64,000 nt of DNA, taken from contig NIVC01002767.1 of the NCBI GenBank assembly GCA_002269645.1, forward strand, positions 62,001 to 126,000, in the 5' to 3' direction. Of this stretch, positions 3,623-18,800 are shown piece after piece (position 1 is the stretch's first letter; each line of letters starts with the position of its first letter). This DNA is from Macrostomum lignano (Eukaryota). Made by a program: the position numbers and the translations under genes. The notes below the pieces were generated by a model, which was given only the letters and a program-made list of their open reading frames with translations, searched no databases and was not told where the DNA came from.

Positions 3623-4396
3623 ATGTCGCCAAGTTGCTTGGCTTCGATTTTGTCGTTTCTGCTGCTACTAGAGGCAGAGCAGCTCAGATCCGAGACTGAG
3701 CACGTTGCCTGCGGCTGGGGCGCCGGGAGCGCGAACCTGAGATTTGACAACTACAAGACTACAACATTAACAATTACATTTTACTGCAACCTTAGCCAAA
3801 GAGTGCGAAATTCTCCGAATCTGGCGGAGAATGCCGATCGGGTCTGCATCGACAAATTCGAGCTCACGACTCAGCTGCCGGCCAACTCGCTGCCAACCCG
3901 GCGCTACAAATCCACCTGCCACTGTCCGACTGCTCTAAGCTGGAGGGGCAGCCGGCCAAGCACCCGCTGCCGCCCCGCCCGCCTGCCCGTGGCGTCTCTG
4001 GAGCCGCTGGATGGCGGCGCGGGCGGTCAGCGCCTCCGTCTGGTGACCCGCCTGCACGGAACCGGCTGCGCCGCGCTGCACCCGCCGCTGAGGCCGCCGC
4101 GGCCGGAGCCGCTGACTGGCGCCGACCTGCGCCGCCTCAACGCCATGCTGGGCCGCCACGGCGCGCTCTACCGGCCCGTCAGCTGCCAGTTGGCCCGAGC
4201 TCAGCCGCAGCCTCAGTTCTTCATCAATGCTGACGCCGCCAGGCTGCCCAGACTGCTGCCGGATGTCCGGTGCCCGTGTCCGGGACAGGCCAGGGTGGAG
4301 CTGCCATTCTTGGAGCTCAGGCGGACGGGCGAAGACGGCCAGCAGCTGCAGCAGAGCCTCGGCAGCATCGGCGTGTCGTGCGCTGTGGCGCCGTGA
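3623..4396 (+). CDS. Secreted protein L1 with two tandem IL-17/cystine-knot-like modules (257 aa, single exon)
   Basis: ATG at 3623, hydrophobic N-terminus (CLASILSFLLLL). Module 1: C..LPTRRYKSTCHC..CRPARLPVASLEP..RLHGTGC. Module 2: RPVSC..FFINADAARLPRLLPDVRCPC..LPFLELRR..SIGVSC, recalling IL-17 N.DP.R.P..L.EA.C..VL.R..V.VGC. Paralogous to 14192-15010. Confidence 0.7.
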   Translation: MSPSCLASILSFLLLLEAEQLRSETEHVACGWGAGSANLRFDNYKTTTLTITFYCNLSQRVRNSPNLAENADRVCIDKFELTTQLPANSLPTRRYKSTCHCPTALSWRGSRPSTRCRPARLPVASLEPLDGGAGGQRLRLVTRLHGTGCAALHPPLRPPRPEPLTGADLRRLNAMLGRHGALYRPVSCQLARAQPQPQFFINADAARLPRLLPDVRCPCPGQARVELPFLELRRTGEDGQQLQQSLGSIGVSCAVAP

Positions 4397-4529
4397 CCGG
4401 CGGCGGGGCTCAGAGGCTCTGCCGACTGTGGGCTGTCCTGTAGACCGCTCAGCAGTCAGCACCCCAGCATCTCCCAACTCTTCATCTATTTATTATTCAC
4501 GGTGCTTTCCTTCATTTCCCACTCTCCCC

Positions 4530-4975
4530 TGCTCTCCCTTCTACTCCCTACTCTCTCCCTACTCTCTCCCTACTCTCTGCCTACTCTCTCCCTACTCTCT
4601 CCCTACTCTCTCCCTACTCTCTCCCTACTCTCTCCCTACTCTCTCCCTACTCTCTCCCTACTCTCTCCCTACTCTCTCCCTACTCTCTCCCTACTCTCTC
4701 CCTACTCTCTGCCTACTCTCTGCCTACTCTCTCCCTACTCTCTCCCTACTCTCTCCCTACTCTCTCCCTACTCTCTCCTACTCTCTCCCTACTCTCTCCC
4801 TACTCTCTCCCTACTCTCTCCCTACTCTCTCCCTACTCTCTCCCTACTCTCTCCCTACTCTCTCCCTACTCTCTCCCTACTCTCACCTCTCCCTACTCTC
4901 TCCCTACTCTCTCCCTACTCTCTCCCTACTCTCACCTCTCCCTACTCTCTCCCTACTCTCTCCCTACTCTCCCCT
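4530..4975. repeat. 11-bp minisatellite (CTACTCTCTCC)
   Basis: Read directly; explains the spurious LSLLSPYSLPT ORFs. Confidence 0.95.
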
Positions 4976-5277
4976 CTCCCTGCCCTCTCGCTCTGTGACC
5001 CCTCCTTTCCATTTTCCGTTGTCCTGACAAACAAACCTGATGCATTGTTTAACAGGGCAGCTGAGACTAAAGCTTGTTGAATGCCGTTTTAATTTGATTT
5101 TTGCTCATAAATAAAGCTGAATAACAAATTTTTCACCTCGATATATTTTTAGAACAAGACTTTTGCTTTTGGAAAACAATATCAATAAAAACACTGGTAG
5201 TGTCCTTAGGTGCGGATATTGAGGGTTCCATGGAATTTCCCATGTAGCCACTTTCATGCTTCTACGAGCGTATGTAC

Positions 5278-15010: not shown

Positions 15011-15409
15011 CCGGCGGCGGGGCTCAGAGGCTCTGCCGACTGCGGGCTGTCCTTCATACAGCTGCCTATAAGAGATGAAGACACTGCATGCCAATGAGAC
15101 TGAAAACTTTGCCGATCTTTGCATGGCGCTTCATACTATTCAAAAATAAACTCTGTCAATTTTCAAGATGCATGGAATATCTGTGAGCACTTGGAAAACT
15201 TTGGCTGTGACCTGTACTTCTCTGATTCTTTGAGCGAATGATGAAGAGGGTGCGCTGAGGAAAACTGCTAAGTGGACACATCTGGTAAACCTTTAAGCAG
15301 TTGGCAACAGCATGCATTTATTGTGTTGGAAAATATATTCAATAACATAATATAAACTTATATACAAATTATTTTATATTATAGTAGATTATGACAGATT
15401 GTATATATG

Positions 15410-15876
15410 TCTGTCTGTGTCTGTCTGTCTGTCTGTCTGTGTCTGTCTGTCTGTCTGTCTGTCTGTCTGTCTGTCTGTCTGTCTGTCTGTCTGTCTGTCT
15501 GTCTGTCTGTCTGTCTGTCTGTCTGTCTGTCTGTCTGTCTGTCTGTCTGTCTGTCTGTCTGTCTGTCTGTCTGTCTGTCTGTCTGTCTGTCTGTCTGTCT
15601 GTCTGTCTGTCTGTCTGTCTGTCTGTCTGTCTGTCTGTCTGTCTGTCTGTCTGTCTGTCTGTCTGTCTGTCTGTCTGTCTGTCTGTCTGTCTGTCTGTCT
15701 GTCTGTCTGTCTGTCTGTCTGTCTGTCTGTCTGTCTGTCTGTCTGTCTGTCTGTTTGTCTGTCTGTCTGTCTGTCTGTCTGTCTGTCTGTCTGTCTGTCT
15801 GTCTGTCTGTCTGTCTGTCTGTCTGTCTGTCTGTCTGTCTGTCTGTCTGTCTGTCTGTCTGTCTGTCTGTCTGTCA
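15410..15876. repeat. (CTGT)n microsatellite abutting the receptor R2 stop codon
   Basis: Read directly. Confidence 0.98.
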
Positions 15877-18800
15877 AACTTCAAAGCCCGTCCGGCTTCT
15901 CCAGCGGCTCCGCCCCGGTGGCAGCCGCAGCTCCTGGAGCACCAGCTTGGCGGTGACCTCCGCAGGGCCGTCCAGCTCCATCAGCTCCTCTGTCGGGGCG
16001 GGCGGCAGCTCCATGGACTGTCTGCAGTCGCCACCGTCGCCGAGGTGCAGCCGCCTCGTGCGGTGCCGCTCCGTCTCCAGGACGGTCAGGAGTTCGCGCC
16101 GCGCCACTTCGGAGCGGCAGTCGGCGAGGCGGAAGTCGCTGAAGTCGGGGCCGCGGCTCACGAGGAGCAGCAGCTGGCAGCGGCGACTCATGCCGGGCCG
16201 CAGGTCGCTCAGGCCGGCCTTCGGGACGCGGAGGCGGCACCGCCTGCTCAGCCGCCGCACCAGCCGAGCGGTGGAGGCGTGGCGGAGCACCTCGTCGGAT
16301 GCGGCGATCAGCAGCAGCGACGGTGGCGGCGGCCGCTTCGCTCCGACAACCGGAGTCAGGACAGCCAGGAAGAGCAGCAGCATCAGCAGCAGCAGCAGCA
16401 GCAGCAGCGGCTTGTGGAGCTCGGCACCGCCGCCAGTCACGGATTGCGCCGCATCGATGCTGACGGTGTCGGCGAAGCGGCAGGCGGCCGACCGTTCGGG
16501 CTGCACCAGCCGCAGCAGGTTGAAGCTGCTGTCAACCCGAGCCGCGTCAGCCAGCCAGAACTTCCTGAACTGATTCGGCCTCTGCCAGGCGGATGCGTTC
16601 TGGTGAAGGCGAGCACGGAGGGATCAGTCTGCACCCTTGGATGCTGTTTGACTCAGTAATCCGGCTGCCAAGCCTCGCCTAAACAAAACAATGCATCAAT
16701 TCGTCAAATTGGCGGAGCTCACCAGCTGCATTCTGATGCAGCGCTTGTTAACTTCGCGGGGGACGCTTAGCTGGAACTGACCGCTCATAGACCAACCCGG
16801 TTTCTAAAAAATAATATATAAGAAAATGTAGAATCCAACTAGCTAAGTAACTAACTAACTAACTAACTAACTAACTAACTAACTAACTAACTAACTAACT
16901 AACTAACTAACTAACTAACTAACTAACTAACTAACTAACTAACTAACTAACTAACTAACTAACTAACTAACTAACTAACTAACTAACTAACTAACTAACT
17001 AACTAACTAACTAACTAACTAACTAACTAACTAGCTAACTAACTAACTAACTAACTAACTAACTAACTAACTAACTAACTAACTAACTAACTAACTAACT
17101 AACTAACTAACTAACTAACTAACTAACTAACTAACTAACTAACTAACTAACTAACTAACTAACTAACTAACTAACTAACTAGCTAACTAACTAACTAGCT
17201 AACTAACTAACTAACTAGCTAACTAACTAACTAACTAACTAACTAACTAACTAACTAACTAACTAACTAACTAACTAACTAGCTAACTAACTAACTAACT
17301 AACTAACTAACTAACTAACTAACTAACTAACTAGCTAACTAACTAACTAGCTAACTGACTAACTAACTGACTAACTAACTCGGCCAGCTCACACTGGGGA
17401 ACAGCAGGGTGACCGCAGCTGACATGAACTTCAGCTCCAAGCTCCTGGACCCGCAGTTCAGCAGGCCTGCCGTCAGGTTGCAGGCGCCGCCGCCGTCGGC
17501 CAGCAGACATCCGGGATCATCCAGGCCGAACTGCGCAAAGCAGCGGGGCTTCGGAGACGCCAGCAGTCGCAGATGAGTCCTGCTCAGGCAAACTCCGGTC
17601 CCGTTCCGCCTGATCCTGGCGCCGTGGACGGCGAAAGTCAGCCAGTTGACTCTGTCCAGCAGCAGCTGCAGGCGGAGCCGAAGGCTGCCCAGTTTCGCCT
17701 GCCGGACCGTCGGGCTGACGCTGAACCGCTGGCAGGCGCTGCTGCTGCTTCTGTCGTGGTTGTAGCTGGCGATGGTGACGGCCAGGGAGTCATCAGGCTG
17801 GCCGCGGCCGAGGTCCAGCTGGAGGCCGGCCCGCCAGGACCCCGGCCGGTCCGGAACAGCCTGGAAGCTCGTGCGGAGCAGCGGGTCCGAGGCTGGGCTG
17901 CTGGCGTCTGCTATAGAGTAGCGACAGCGGGACGAAGTCGGAGCTGCGGGATCTGAGCAGTTGGAGGGGTCTGTTCTGACTCGTCCAGGCTGCGGCTTCT
18001 GTTGATCCCCGGACCTCCTCTTGAGGGGAGTTTGGGGAGGGATTTGGGAAGTCTGAGGTGTTGGGAGTTGGAAGGTTTGAGGAGTCGGGAAGTTTGAGGA
18101 GTCGGGAAGCTTGAGGAGTTGGGAAGTTTGAGGAGTCGGGAAGTTTGAGGAGTCGGGAAGTTTGAGGAGTCGGGAAGTTTGAGGAGTCGGGAAGTTTGAG
18201 GAGTCGGGAAGTTTGAGGAGTCGGGAAGTTTGAGGAGTCGGGAAGTTTGAGGAGTCGGGAAGTTTGAGGAGTCGGGAAGTTTGAGGAGTCGGGAAGTTTG
18301 AGGAGTCGGGAAGTTTGAGGAGTCGGGAAGTTTGAGGAGTCGGGAAGTTTGAGGAGTCGGGAAGTTTGAGGAGTCGGGAAGTTTGAGGAGTCGGGAAGTT
18401 TGAGGAGTCGGGAAGTTTGAGGAGTCGGGAAGTTTGAGGAGTCGGGAAGGTTTGAGGAGTCGGGAAGTTTGAGGAGTCGGGAAGTTTGAGGAGTCGGGAA
18501 GCTTGAGGAGTCGGGAAGCTTGAGGAGTCGGGAAGTTTGAGGAGTCGGGAAGTTTGAGGAGTCGGGAAGTTTGAGGAGTCGGGAAGTTTGAGGAGTCGGG
18601 AAGTTTGAGGAGTCGGGAAGTTTGAGGAGTCGGGAAGTTTGAGGAGTCGGGAAGTTTGGGGAGTTGGGAAGTTTGAGGAGTCGGGAAGTTTGAGGAGTCG
18701 GGAAGTTTGAGGAGTCGGGAAGTTTGAGGAGTCGGGAAGTTTGGGGAGTTGGGAAGTTTGAGTATAGTAGTTAGGAAGTTTTAGGAGTTAGATTTTTCAG

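Follow-up and report, generated by a model that had tools for sequence, protein, structure and literature searches.

How can two neighboring copies of a gene pair be almost identical in one half of each gene and deeply diverged in the other half? This question is raised by a 64,000-nt stretch of Macrostomum lignano DNA (NCBI GenBank assembly GCA_002269645.1, contig NIVC01002767.1, positions 62,001 to 126,000 of the forward strand), hereinafter the window, with all coordinates counted from its first letter. Within the window we have found exactly two convergent, tail-to-tail cassettes located ~10.6 kb apart, each comprised of a gene L on the + strand and a gene R on the - strand; no third copy of either gene has been identified there by tblastn. 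L is an intronless gene for a predicted secreted Cys-rich protein (~260 aa), and R, a 4–5-exon gene for a predicted type I single-pass membrane protein (~510 aa). In both genes the 3' coding parts of the two copies are near-identical, the 5' parts are only ~50–60% identical at the DNA level, and the boundary between them is sharp. The explanation we favor, with a probability of roughly three in four, is that the cassettes are ancient tandem paralogues and that the 3' coding parts of both genes have been homogenized by interlocus gene conversion in two tracts.

Near-identical 3' blocks and their breakpoints

The cassettes are composed of the following features.

3623–4396, + strand: L1 coding sequence, a single exon of 257 aa with an N-terminal hydrophobic signal and 11 Cys (open reading frame and translation, tblastn)
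3623–3963, + strand: divergent 5' part of L1, signal peptide and Cys-rich N-terminal part
3964–4439, + strand: near-identical, putatively homogenized tract of L1, the C-terminal 144 codons and 43 nt of the 3' untranslated region (UTR)
4440–5278: cassette-1 spacer, with an 11-nt minisatellite at 4532–4975
5279–6029: (GTCT)188 array of cassette 1, abutting the R1 stop codon
6030–6693, - strand: putatively homogenized tract of R1, juxtamembrane stalk, poly-Leu transmembrane segment and ~155-aa cytoplasmic tail
6028–6750, - strand: R1 last exon (exon 5), phase-0 acceptor ctcag|AAT, in-frame model
6824–6904, - strand: R1 81-nt ectodomain exon (exon 4), canonical AG/GT
7389–7936, - strand: R1 large ectodomain exon (exon 3), tblastn similarity to R2
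8035–8125, - strand: R1 predicted exon 2, canonical sites and matching phases, yielding an open 511-aa model
11331–11423, - strand: R1 candidate exon 1 with the signal peptide, predicted from sequence only, donor gtaagt
14192–15010, + strand: L2 coding sequence, a single exon of 272 aa
14572–15053, + strand: putatively homogenized tract of L2, partner of L1 3964–4439
15054–15407: cassette-2 spacer, unrelated to the cassette-1 spacer
15408–15875: (GTCT)n array of cassette 2, abutting the R2 stop codon
15876–16527, - strand: putatively homogenized tract of R2, partner of R1 6030–6693
15874–16599, - strand: R2 last exon, breakpoint 72 nt inside
16723–16803, - strand: R2 81-nt ectodomain exon, canonical model
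17393–17998, - strand: R2 large ectodomain exon, counterpart of exons 2 and 3 of R1, undivided by an intron
22230–22337, - strand: R2 exon 1 with a candidate signal peptide, likewise predicted from the DNA itself, donor gtaagt, yielding an open 506-aa model

The R1 (511 aa) and R2 (506 aa) models are complete and in-frame, with canonical GT–AG introns, R1 having one intron more than R2. The predicted order of domains in R is signal peptide, Cys-containing ectodomain of ~270 aa (predicted to be beta-rich), poly-Leu transmembrane segment, KRPPPP, and the ~155-aa tail.

BLAST self-comparison of the window has revealed only two dispersed (non-tandem) repeats, both located in the 3' coding parts and the adjoining array or UTR: the L repeat, 3964–4439 vs 14572–15053 (97.3% identity, 482 columns), and the R repeat, 5558–6693 vs 15408–16527 (96.9% identity). 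As the segments 5558–6029 and 15408–15875 are low-complexity (GTCT)n, the informative part of the R repeat is 6030–6693 vs 15876–16527. These blocks agree to within 1–2 nt with those noticed in an earlier reading of the same DNA (below, the original prediction).

The L tracts differ by nine substitutions (1.9%) and one 6-nt indel, the R tracts by nine substitutions (1.4%) and one 12-nt indel; both indels are in frame, and both copies keep open reading frames. In the cytoplasmic tail of R the codon alignment contains just the two replacements listed in the original prediction, K/E and T/M; the remaining differences of the R tracts fall in the juxtamembrane stalk (V/F and P/Q) and in the transmembrane segment (L/M and a 4-Leu indel). 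Non-synonymous and synonymous changes within the tracts are in the ratios 6:4 and 5:4.

The near-identity stops abruptly in mid-exon, as had been claimed. In L the breakpoint (3964 / 14572) lies inside the single exon; in R, where the last exon begins at 6750 / 16599, identity begins at 6693 / 16527, that is, 57 nt (R1) or 72 nt (R2) from the acceptor. The maximum chi-square breakpoint test (2000 permutations) yields 259 for L, with 51.6% vs 1.9% differing sites on the two sides, and 348 for R, with 44.9% vs 1.4% (p < 0.0005 in both cases), the largest permuted values being ~20–23; the breakpoints found by this test coincide with the edges of the BLAST blocks.

The numbers of synonymous and non-synonymous differences per site (dS and dN, respectively) were estimated by the Nei–Gojobori method for L1 vs L2 and R1 vs R2. 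The 5' part of L has dS 1.34 and dN 0.76, compared to dS 0.034 in its 3' part. In R, dS is 0.99 in the large exon, saturated in the 81-nt exon, and changes from 1.34 before to 0.021 after the breakpoint in the last exon. Thus, dS falls 40–60-fold across the breakpoints, and differences at third codon positions amount to 2–3% inside the tracts vs 50–58% outside. A uniform dS, named in the original prediction as the observation contradicting it, is not what we see: the values are 0.99–1.34 or saturated outside and 0.021–0.034 inside. The dN/dS ratio of the divergent parts, 0.5–0.8, has been computed at saturated dS and is no indicator of diversifying selection.

These data bear directly on the simplest alternative, that, since an ancient duplication, the 3' parts have stayed identical through purifying selection and nothing else. 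These parts encode the C-terminal half of L and, in R, the transmembrane segment together with the tail, all of which could be constrained, but the near-identity extends to synonymous sites and to 43 nt of the 3' UTR (dS 0.02–0.03 vs at least 1 in the adjacent sequence), and inside the tracts the two kinds of change, non-synonymous and synonymous, occur equally often. We consider selection alone to be refuted by the synonymous-site data.

Divergent halves, spacers, and flanks

The 5' parts of the two copies are truly homologous and anciently diverged. In L, the five Cys of the mature protein that precede the breakpoint are conserved, as are the motifs ACGWGAGS, LAEN, and SLPxxRY...CxC. The large ectodomain exon of R retains 43% amino acid identity between R1 and R2 (tblastn), and the ectodomain as a whole, seven Cys, an IRRNxT glycosylation site, and the DPGC and GLLxCG motifs. 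The 81-nt exon is bounded by the same phase-0 introns in both copies, and its products share 6 of 27 residues, the same count as in the original prediction, when the R1/R2 codon alignment is compared ungapped by hand. Indels in the divergent parts are in frame.

In contrast, self-comparison of the whole window shows zero similarity between the introns or the 5' flanks of the two cassettes, and no homology has been found between the spacers at 4440–5278 (839 bp) and 15054–15407 (354 bp), whose best local score is 12 vs 11 ± 1.5 for shuffled sequences. As the spacers lack homology, the identity forms two separate blocks rather than one. Moreover, conserved Cys and introns outside the tracts, taken together with the absence of anything shared in introns, flanks, and spacer, indicate that the cassettes are old duplicates in which the 3' blocks have recently been reset.

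The reverse order of events would make the cassettes young duplicates (dS ~0.02–0.03) with 5' parts replaced by conversion from distant family members or altered by localized hyper-divergence. Indeed, a two-copy mosaic does not by itself tell which part is old, and further paralogues may exist outside the window. Still, the introns, the 5' flanks, and the spacer between the identical blocks are all non-homologous and R1 has an extra intron compared to R2, so that everything but two coding blocks would have to be lost; and the 5' parts have reached saturation at synonymous sites, beyond what selection at the protein level can produce. Hence we regard this scenario as very unlikely.

Equally little weight can be given to an assembly artefact, be it collapse, chimerism, or the tandem placement of two haplotypes of a single locus. 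The sequence does invite it, as long micro- and minisatellites occur throughout and (GTCT)n beside the R tract is a classical site of misassembly. On the other hand, 18 substitutions and two in-frame indels set the copies apart, both frames remain open across 5' breakpoints that fall within unique exon sequence, and, unlike in haplotigs, no flanking gene or non-coding sequence is duplicated. For annotators and assemblers the practical caution is that the two 3' blocks most probably are real paralogous sequence within a minisatellite-rich region.

Many tandem arrays accompany the R genes. The intron between the large and the 81-nt ectodomain exons consists of more than 90% microsatellite, differing by copy: (AGT)152 in R1 (6905–7388) and (AACT)136 in R2 (16804–17392). 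The (GTCT)n array, which is (CAGA)n on the R strand, begins right at the R stop codon in both copies (TGA|cagacaga) and is 751 bp (5279–6029) and 468 bp (15408–15875) long; in the frame of R it has no stop codons and would encode DRQT repeats, so that loss of the TGA would append a long repeat tail to the protein. In intron 1 of R2 a 17-nt minisatellite (18064–18762) is open in the frame of the next R2 exon, coding for 17-aa repeats; it is taken to be intronic because it is preceded by stop codons and no signal peptide. Intron 1 of R1 contains an unrelated 17-nt array at 8872–9868 and, at 10152–10493, a palindromic region of 16-nt repeats around short interstitial CCCTAA telomere-type repeats (~10285–10330). 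The candidate first exon of R2 is closely preceded by an inverted pair of elements resembling tRNA-derived short interspersed elements (22621–22707 / 22847–22933), with 87-nt arms that are 83% complementary.

Between the cassettes, at 13300–13900, broken frames with a CX2CX4HX4C-like zinc-knuckle motif (CRNKCGKQGHIASACP) suggest a decayed fragment of a retroelement gag gene. The open reading frame at 13699–14016 has no Pfam match; this frame differs from that of the zinc knuckle, which was not scanned.

Origin of the mosaic

According to the reading favored here, a convergent L–R pair would have been duplicated in tandem long ago (dS ~1 or more), and much later ectopic conversion between the cassettes would have overwritten the 3' coding parts of both L and R, resetting them to 1–2% divergence (dS 0.02–0.03). 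The conversion would have taken place in two separate tracts, whose lengths of 476 bp and at least 664 bp are ordinary. The original prediction had left the choice between gene conversion and unequal crossover; the former agrees with the 40–60-fold drop of dS, the sharp breakpoints, and the conserved exon structure and Cys outside the tracts, while crossover alone does not account for the pattern. A single unequal crossover would have made everything beyond the breakpoint identical, including the whole of R, introns, and spacer, and we reject it, as two short blocks with an unrelated spacer are observed instead.

The number of tracts needs separate consideration. One tract of ~2–2.7 kb from mid-L to mid-R, produced by conversion or double crossover, could have been followed by replacement of the spacer in one cassette via deletion, insertion, and minisatellite growth. 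The L and R tracts are similarly diverged (1.9% and 1.4% substitutions), they make up the two ends of a single contiguous stretch in the middle of the cassette, and the region is extremely prone to turnover of tandem arrays, all of which fit such a history. But 4440–5278 and 15054–15407 retain zero residual similarity despite 1–2% divergence of the adjoining tracts, and the replacement would have to span exactly from 43 nt past the L stop codon to the microsatellite. As the spacers are unrelated, two tracts are more parsimonious than one tract with complete spacer turnover, and a single tract seems unlikely to us.

In the two-tract conversion reading, the sharp edges would most likely mark the points where homology was already too low for heteroduplex formation. 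Sequences 50–60% identical at the DNA level are far below the homology requirement of recombination and conversion. Fast-evolving parts may thus have escaped conversion, and slowly evolving parts may have stayed similar enough to be converted further. With 5' identity that low, the edges need no special "protection" of recognition parts of the kind considered in the original prediction, and this neutral model, with fast-evolving parts below the homology needed, also accounts for the mosaic.

Conversion has possibly been recurrent. Substitutions are skewed 7:2 toward the 5' boundary in both the L and R tracts, and denser differences at the 5' edges than in the cores (0.8% in the core vs 6.2% at the edge, and 0.5% vs 3.0%, with cut points chosen post hoc) suggest nested tracts of different age.

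The composition of the tracts gives a hint about the donor. Their GC content is the highest (0.71–0.74), with GC content at third codon positions (GC3) 0.87–0.89, compared to GC3 of 0.79–0.84 in the flanks in cassette 2 and 0.56–0.73 in cassette 1, where GC rises abruptly at the R1 breakpoint, from 0.40 to 0.71. This match hints that cassette 2 is the more likely donor, or that conversion has been GC-biased. In cassette 1 both tracts end beside long tandem arrays, the 11-nt array (4532–4975) and (GTCT)188 (5279–6029), and it is plausible that the (GTCT)n and 11-nt arrays are break-prone sites where conversion is initiated or terminated.

Several points weigh against conversion in two tracts as described. 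With two sequences and no outgroup or orthologue, conversion is not formally separable from other mosaic histories, and the donor and direction proposed for it are tentative. It would be a coincidence for two independent tracts in adjacent genes to be of near-equal age, unless conversion is recurrent or a single event was patchy; and the edge-to-core gradient suggesting recurrence has p = 0.18 per gene under an unbiased half-split, and so is suggestive only. Finally, the analysis rests on the assembled sequence, which may contain an error.

The mosaic is an ordinary, clean instance of a well-known process, gene conversion, in an uncharacterized gene pair, and provides a very clean example of partial concerted evolution, precise to the nucleotide. 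Less usual is that two adjacent convergent genes have the same mosaic at the same apparent age.

The closest known analogue seems to be the conversion between TLR1 and TLR6 of mammals, which preserves the similarity of the TIR domain, the transmembrane segment, and the ectodomain close to the membrane and leaves the N-terminal leucine-rich repeats to diverge (Kruithof et al., 2007, PMC2077338); in the authors' reading, conversion limits divergence of the part that is shared with common partners (PMC2077338). Like R, these are tandem type I receptor paralogues with a near-identical C-terminal block and a divergent N-terminal part. Unlike them, R has no detectable TIR domain and its family is unplaced, and the adjoining convergent gene of a secreted protein, L, has the same mosaic. 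In Siglec-5/Siglec-14, an example of partial homogenization among paired immune receptors, the ligand-binding ectodomain is homogenized and the transmembrane and tail parts differ. Here, too, neighboring receptor paralogues have a sharp boundary between converted and unconverted sequence, but the polarity is the mirror image of that in R, where the tail is homogenized.

This polarity makes the name "effector half", given to the near-identical parts in the original prediction, reasonable for R, whose tract covers the stalk, transmembrane segment, and tail. It does not suit L, as the L tract comprises the C-terminal 144 of ~235 mature residues and starts within the first putative module, delimited on weak motif evidence. 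A division of the proteins into recognition and signaling parts, with specificity set by ligand module 1 and the ectodomain as proposed in the original prediction, is conjectural.

Family identity of L and R and other features of the window

Neither L nor R has been assigned to any family. Searches for homologous proteins with L2 and R2 gave zero matches, as did an exhaustive HMMER search of 1.84 billion representatives with the R1/R2 profile, and scans of metagenome contigs with back-translated patterns of the R and L profiles identified no relatives. As a control, the BTB/LZTR1-like exon of the window gave a single 47% match in these libraries; since this control is near-empty, the libraries are poor in animal proteins, and missing homologues are no evidence that L and R are orphans.

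Weak hints lead to the IL-17 cytokines and the SEFIR domain of their receptors. Pfam comparisons of whole proteins, isolated modules, tail, and ectodomain yielded nothing but a match of L2 to IL17 (PF06083), which at 12.4 bits and E = 0.22 is below the gathering score (cut-off 24), with none for L1. Searches of PDB sequences with the L profile and the R tail returned nothing at E <= 10. L has two copies of the pattern (R/S)LPxx(L/R)(Y/L)xxxRCxC, which resembles the IL-17 core NRYPxxxxxAxCxxxGC with scores below significance, and its C-terminus, ...SIGVSCAV, resembles ...VGCTCV of IL-17. Both L modules carry the LPxxxxxxxCxC motif. Module 2 can be aligned collinearly with IL-17A, IL-17F, and IL-25 across the whole domain (58–63 columns), with an hhalign probability of only 1.6–3.6%, the overall range of L comparisons to IL-17 being 1.3–3.6%; it contains CxC and one C rather than CxC and CxC, so that one knot cysteine is missing. 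Internal duplication of L is not supported, as Smith–Waterman alignments with shuffles are not significant (z = 1.0 and 2.6) and modules 1 and 2 align with an hhalign probability of 1.2%.

For the R tail, SEFIR (PF08357) yields no Pfam or PDB match at E <= 10 and none among the 1.84 billion representatives. Comparison by hhalign with the SEFIR domains of IL-17RA and IL-17RB gives a probability of 8.8% over 18 columns only; within this 18-residue match, itself below significance, a 13-residue stretch of the tail is aligned to FTEFLQNHCRSEV of IL-17RB, and what remains of the tail beyond this motif is not long enough to hold a complete SEFIR. The profile sequences of IL-17A, IL-17F, IL-25, and the IL-17RA SEFIR were verified by comparison with PDB chains; those of the IL-17RB SEFIR came from PDB output. 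A TIR reading of the tail, made by eye, was rejected, with no Pfam match and hhalign probabilities of 0.5% vs the TIR domains of MyD88, TLR2, and TLR1 (approximate query sequences). The AlphaFold2 models have a mean predicted local distance difference test score (pLDDT) of 32 for L and 35 for R and provide no usable fold; the R model is beta-rich, but its pLDDT of 20–46 is too low for a fold search aimed at Fibronectin-III-like modules.

L and R are called mutual ligand and receptor because of their linkage and co-duplication only. In a further reading, L might be a highly derived IL-17-like cytokine and R its cognate, likewise highly derived SEFIR-like receptor, the pair having been duplicated together; each cassette would have private specificities in the 5' parts, and recurrent conversion would keep uniform, for a common pathway, the C-terminal half of L and, in R, everything from the stalk through the transmembrane segment to the tail. 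We consider this improbable, and IL-17/SEFIR stays a lead.

Tightly linked, co-diverging ligand–receptor gene pairs are known from the Brassica SCR/SRK and basidiomycete pheromone/receptor loci. As in pairs of the SCR/SRK type, a gene for a secreted Cys-rich protein stands here beside a gene for a single-pass receptor-like protein, and the pair has been duplicated as a unit with diverging putative recognition parts. Unlike these pairs, the cassettes are tandem paralogues rather than alleles, R has no recognized signaling domain such as a kinase, and the pairing of L with R is putative. If L and R do bind each other, the locus would show a ligand–receptor module duplicated and re-specified, with conversion keeping the shared parts interchangeable, and the genes would be natural chimaeras suitable for mapping specificity. 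If, in addition, the IL-17-like/SEFIR-like reading were true, this would be a genomic device multiplying matched ligand–receptor specificities on a common signaling chassis. In any case, the locus flags an unannotated, lineage-restricted pair of genes for a secreted and a membrane protein.

The window is a eukaryotic sequence in which micro- and minisatellites are extremely abundant. No RNA genes were identified in it by Rfam and tRNA scans. On the - strand at ~2078–2453 we observe a small two-exon gene for a secreted Cys-rich protein of ~104 aa (MSFSSLLWILLAVSVAAATA...CLYFCNHCFKT...HCANSWC...RAC), which has no Pfam match and is not duplicated with the cassettes; its Cys spacing is, in our assumption, reminiscent of small neuropeptide or hormone precursors. 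Downstream of the cassettes are housekeeping genes, namely eL33/RPL35A, ORC3, a VPS51-like gene, and genes for a mitochondrial carrier, an MFS transporter, and a BTB/LZTR1-like protein. Among solved structures, the best match of the eL33 protein is the octopus ribosome chain 9eho (183 bits), followed by chain 7oya, presumably of zebrafish, with 164 bits, as would be expected for a non-vertebrate animal, perhaps a lophotrochozoan. A family of 28–30-nt minisatellites (unit ~CAGCAACTGAGGATCTGGGAGGCTGGCC), with 92–96% identity, is present at 26182–26423, 27155–27903, and 33985–34442, in introns of the ORC3-like and VPS51-like genes.

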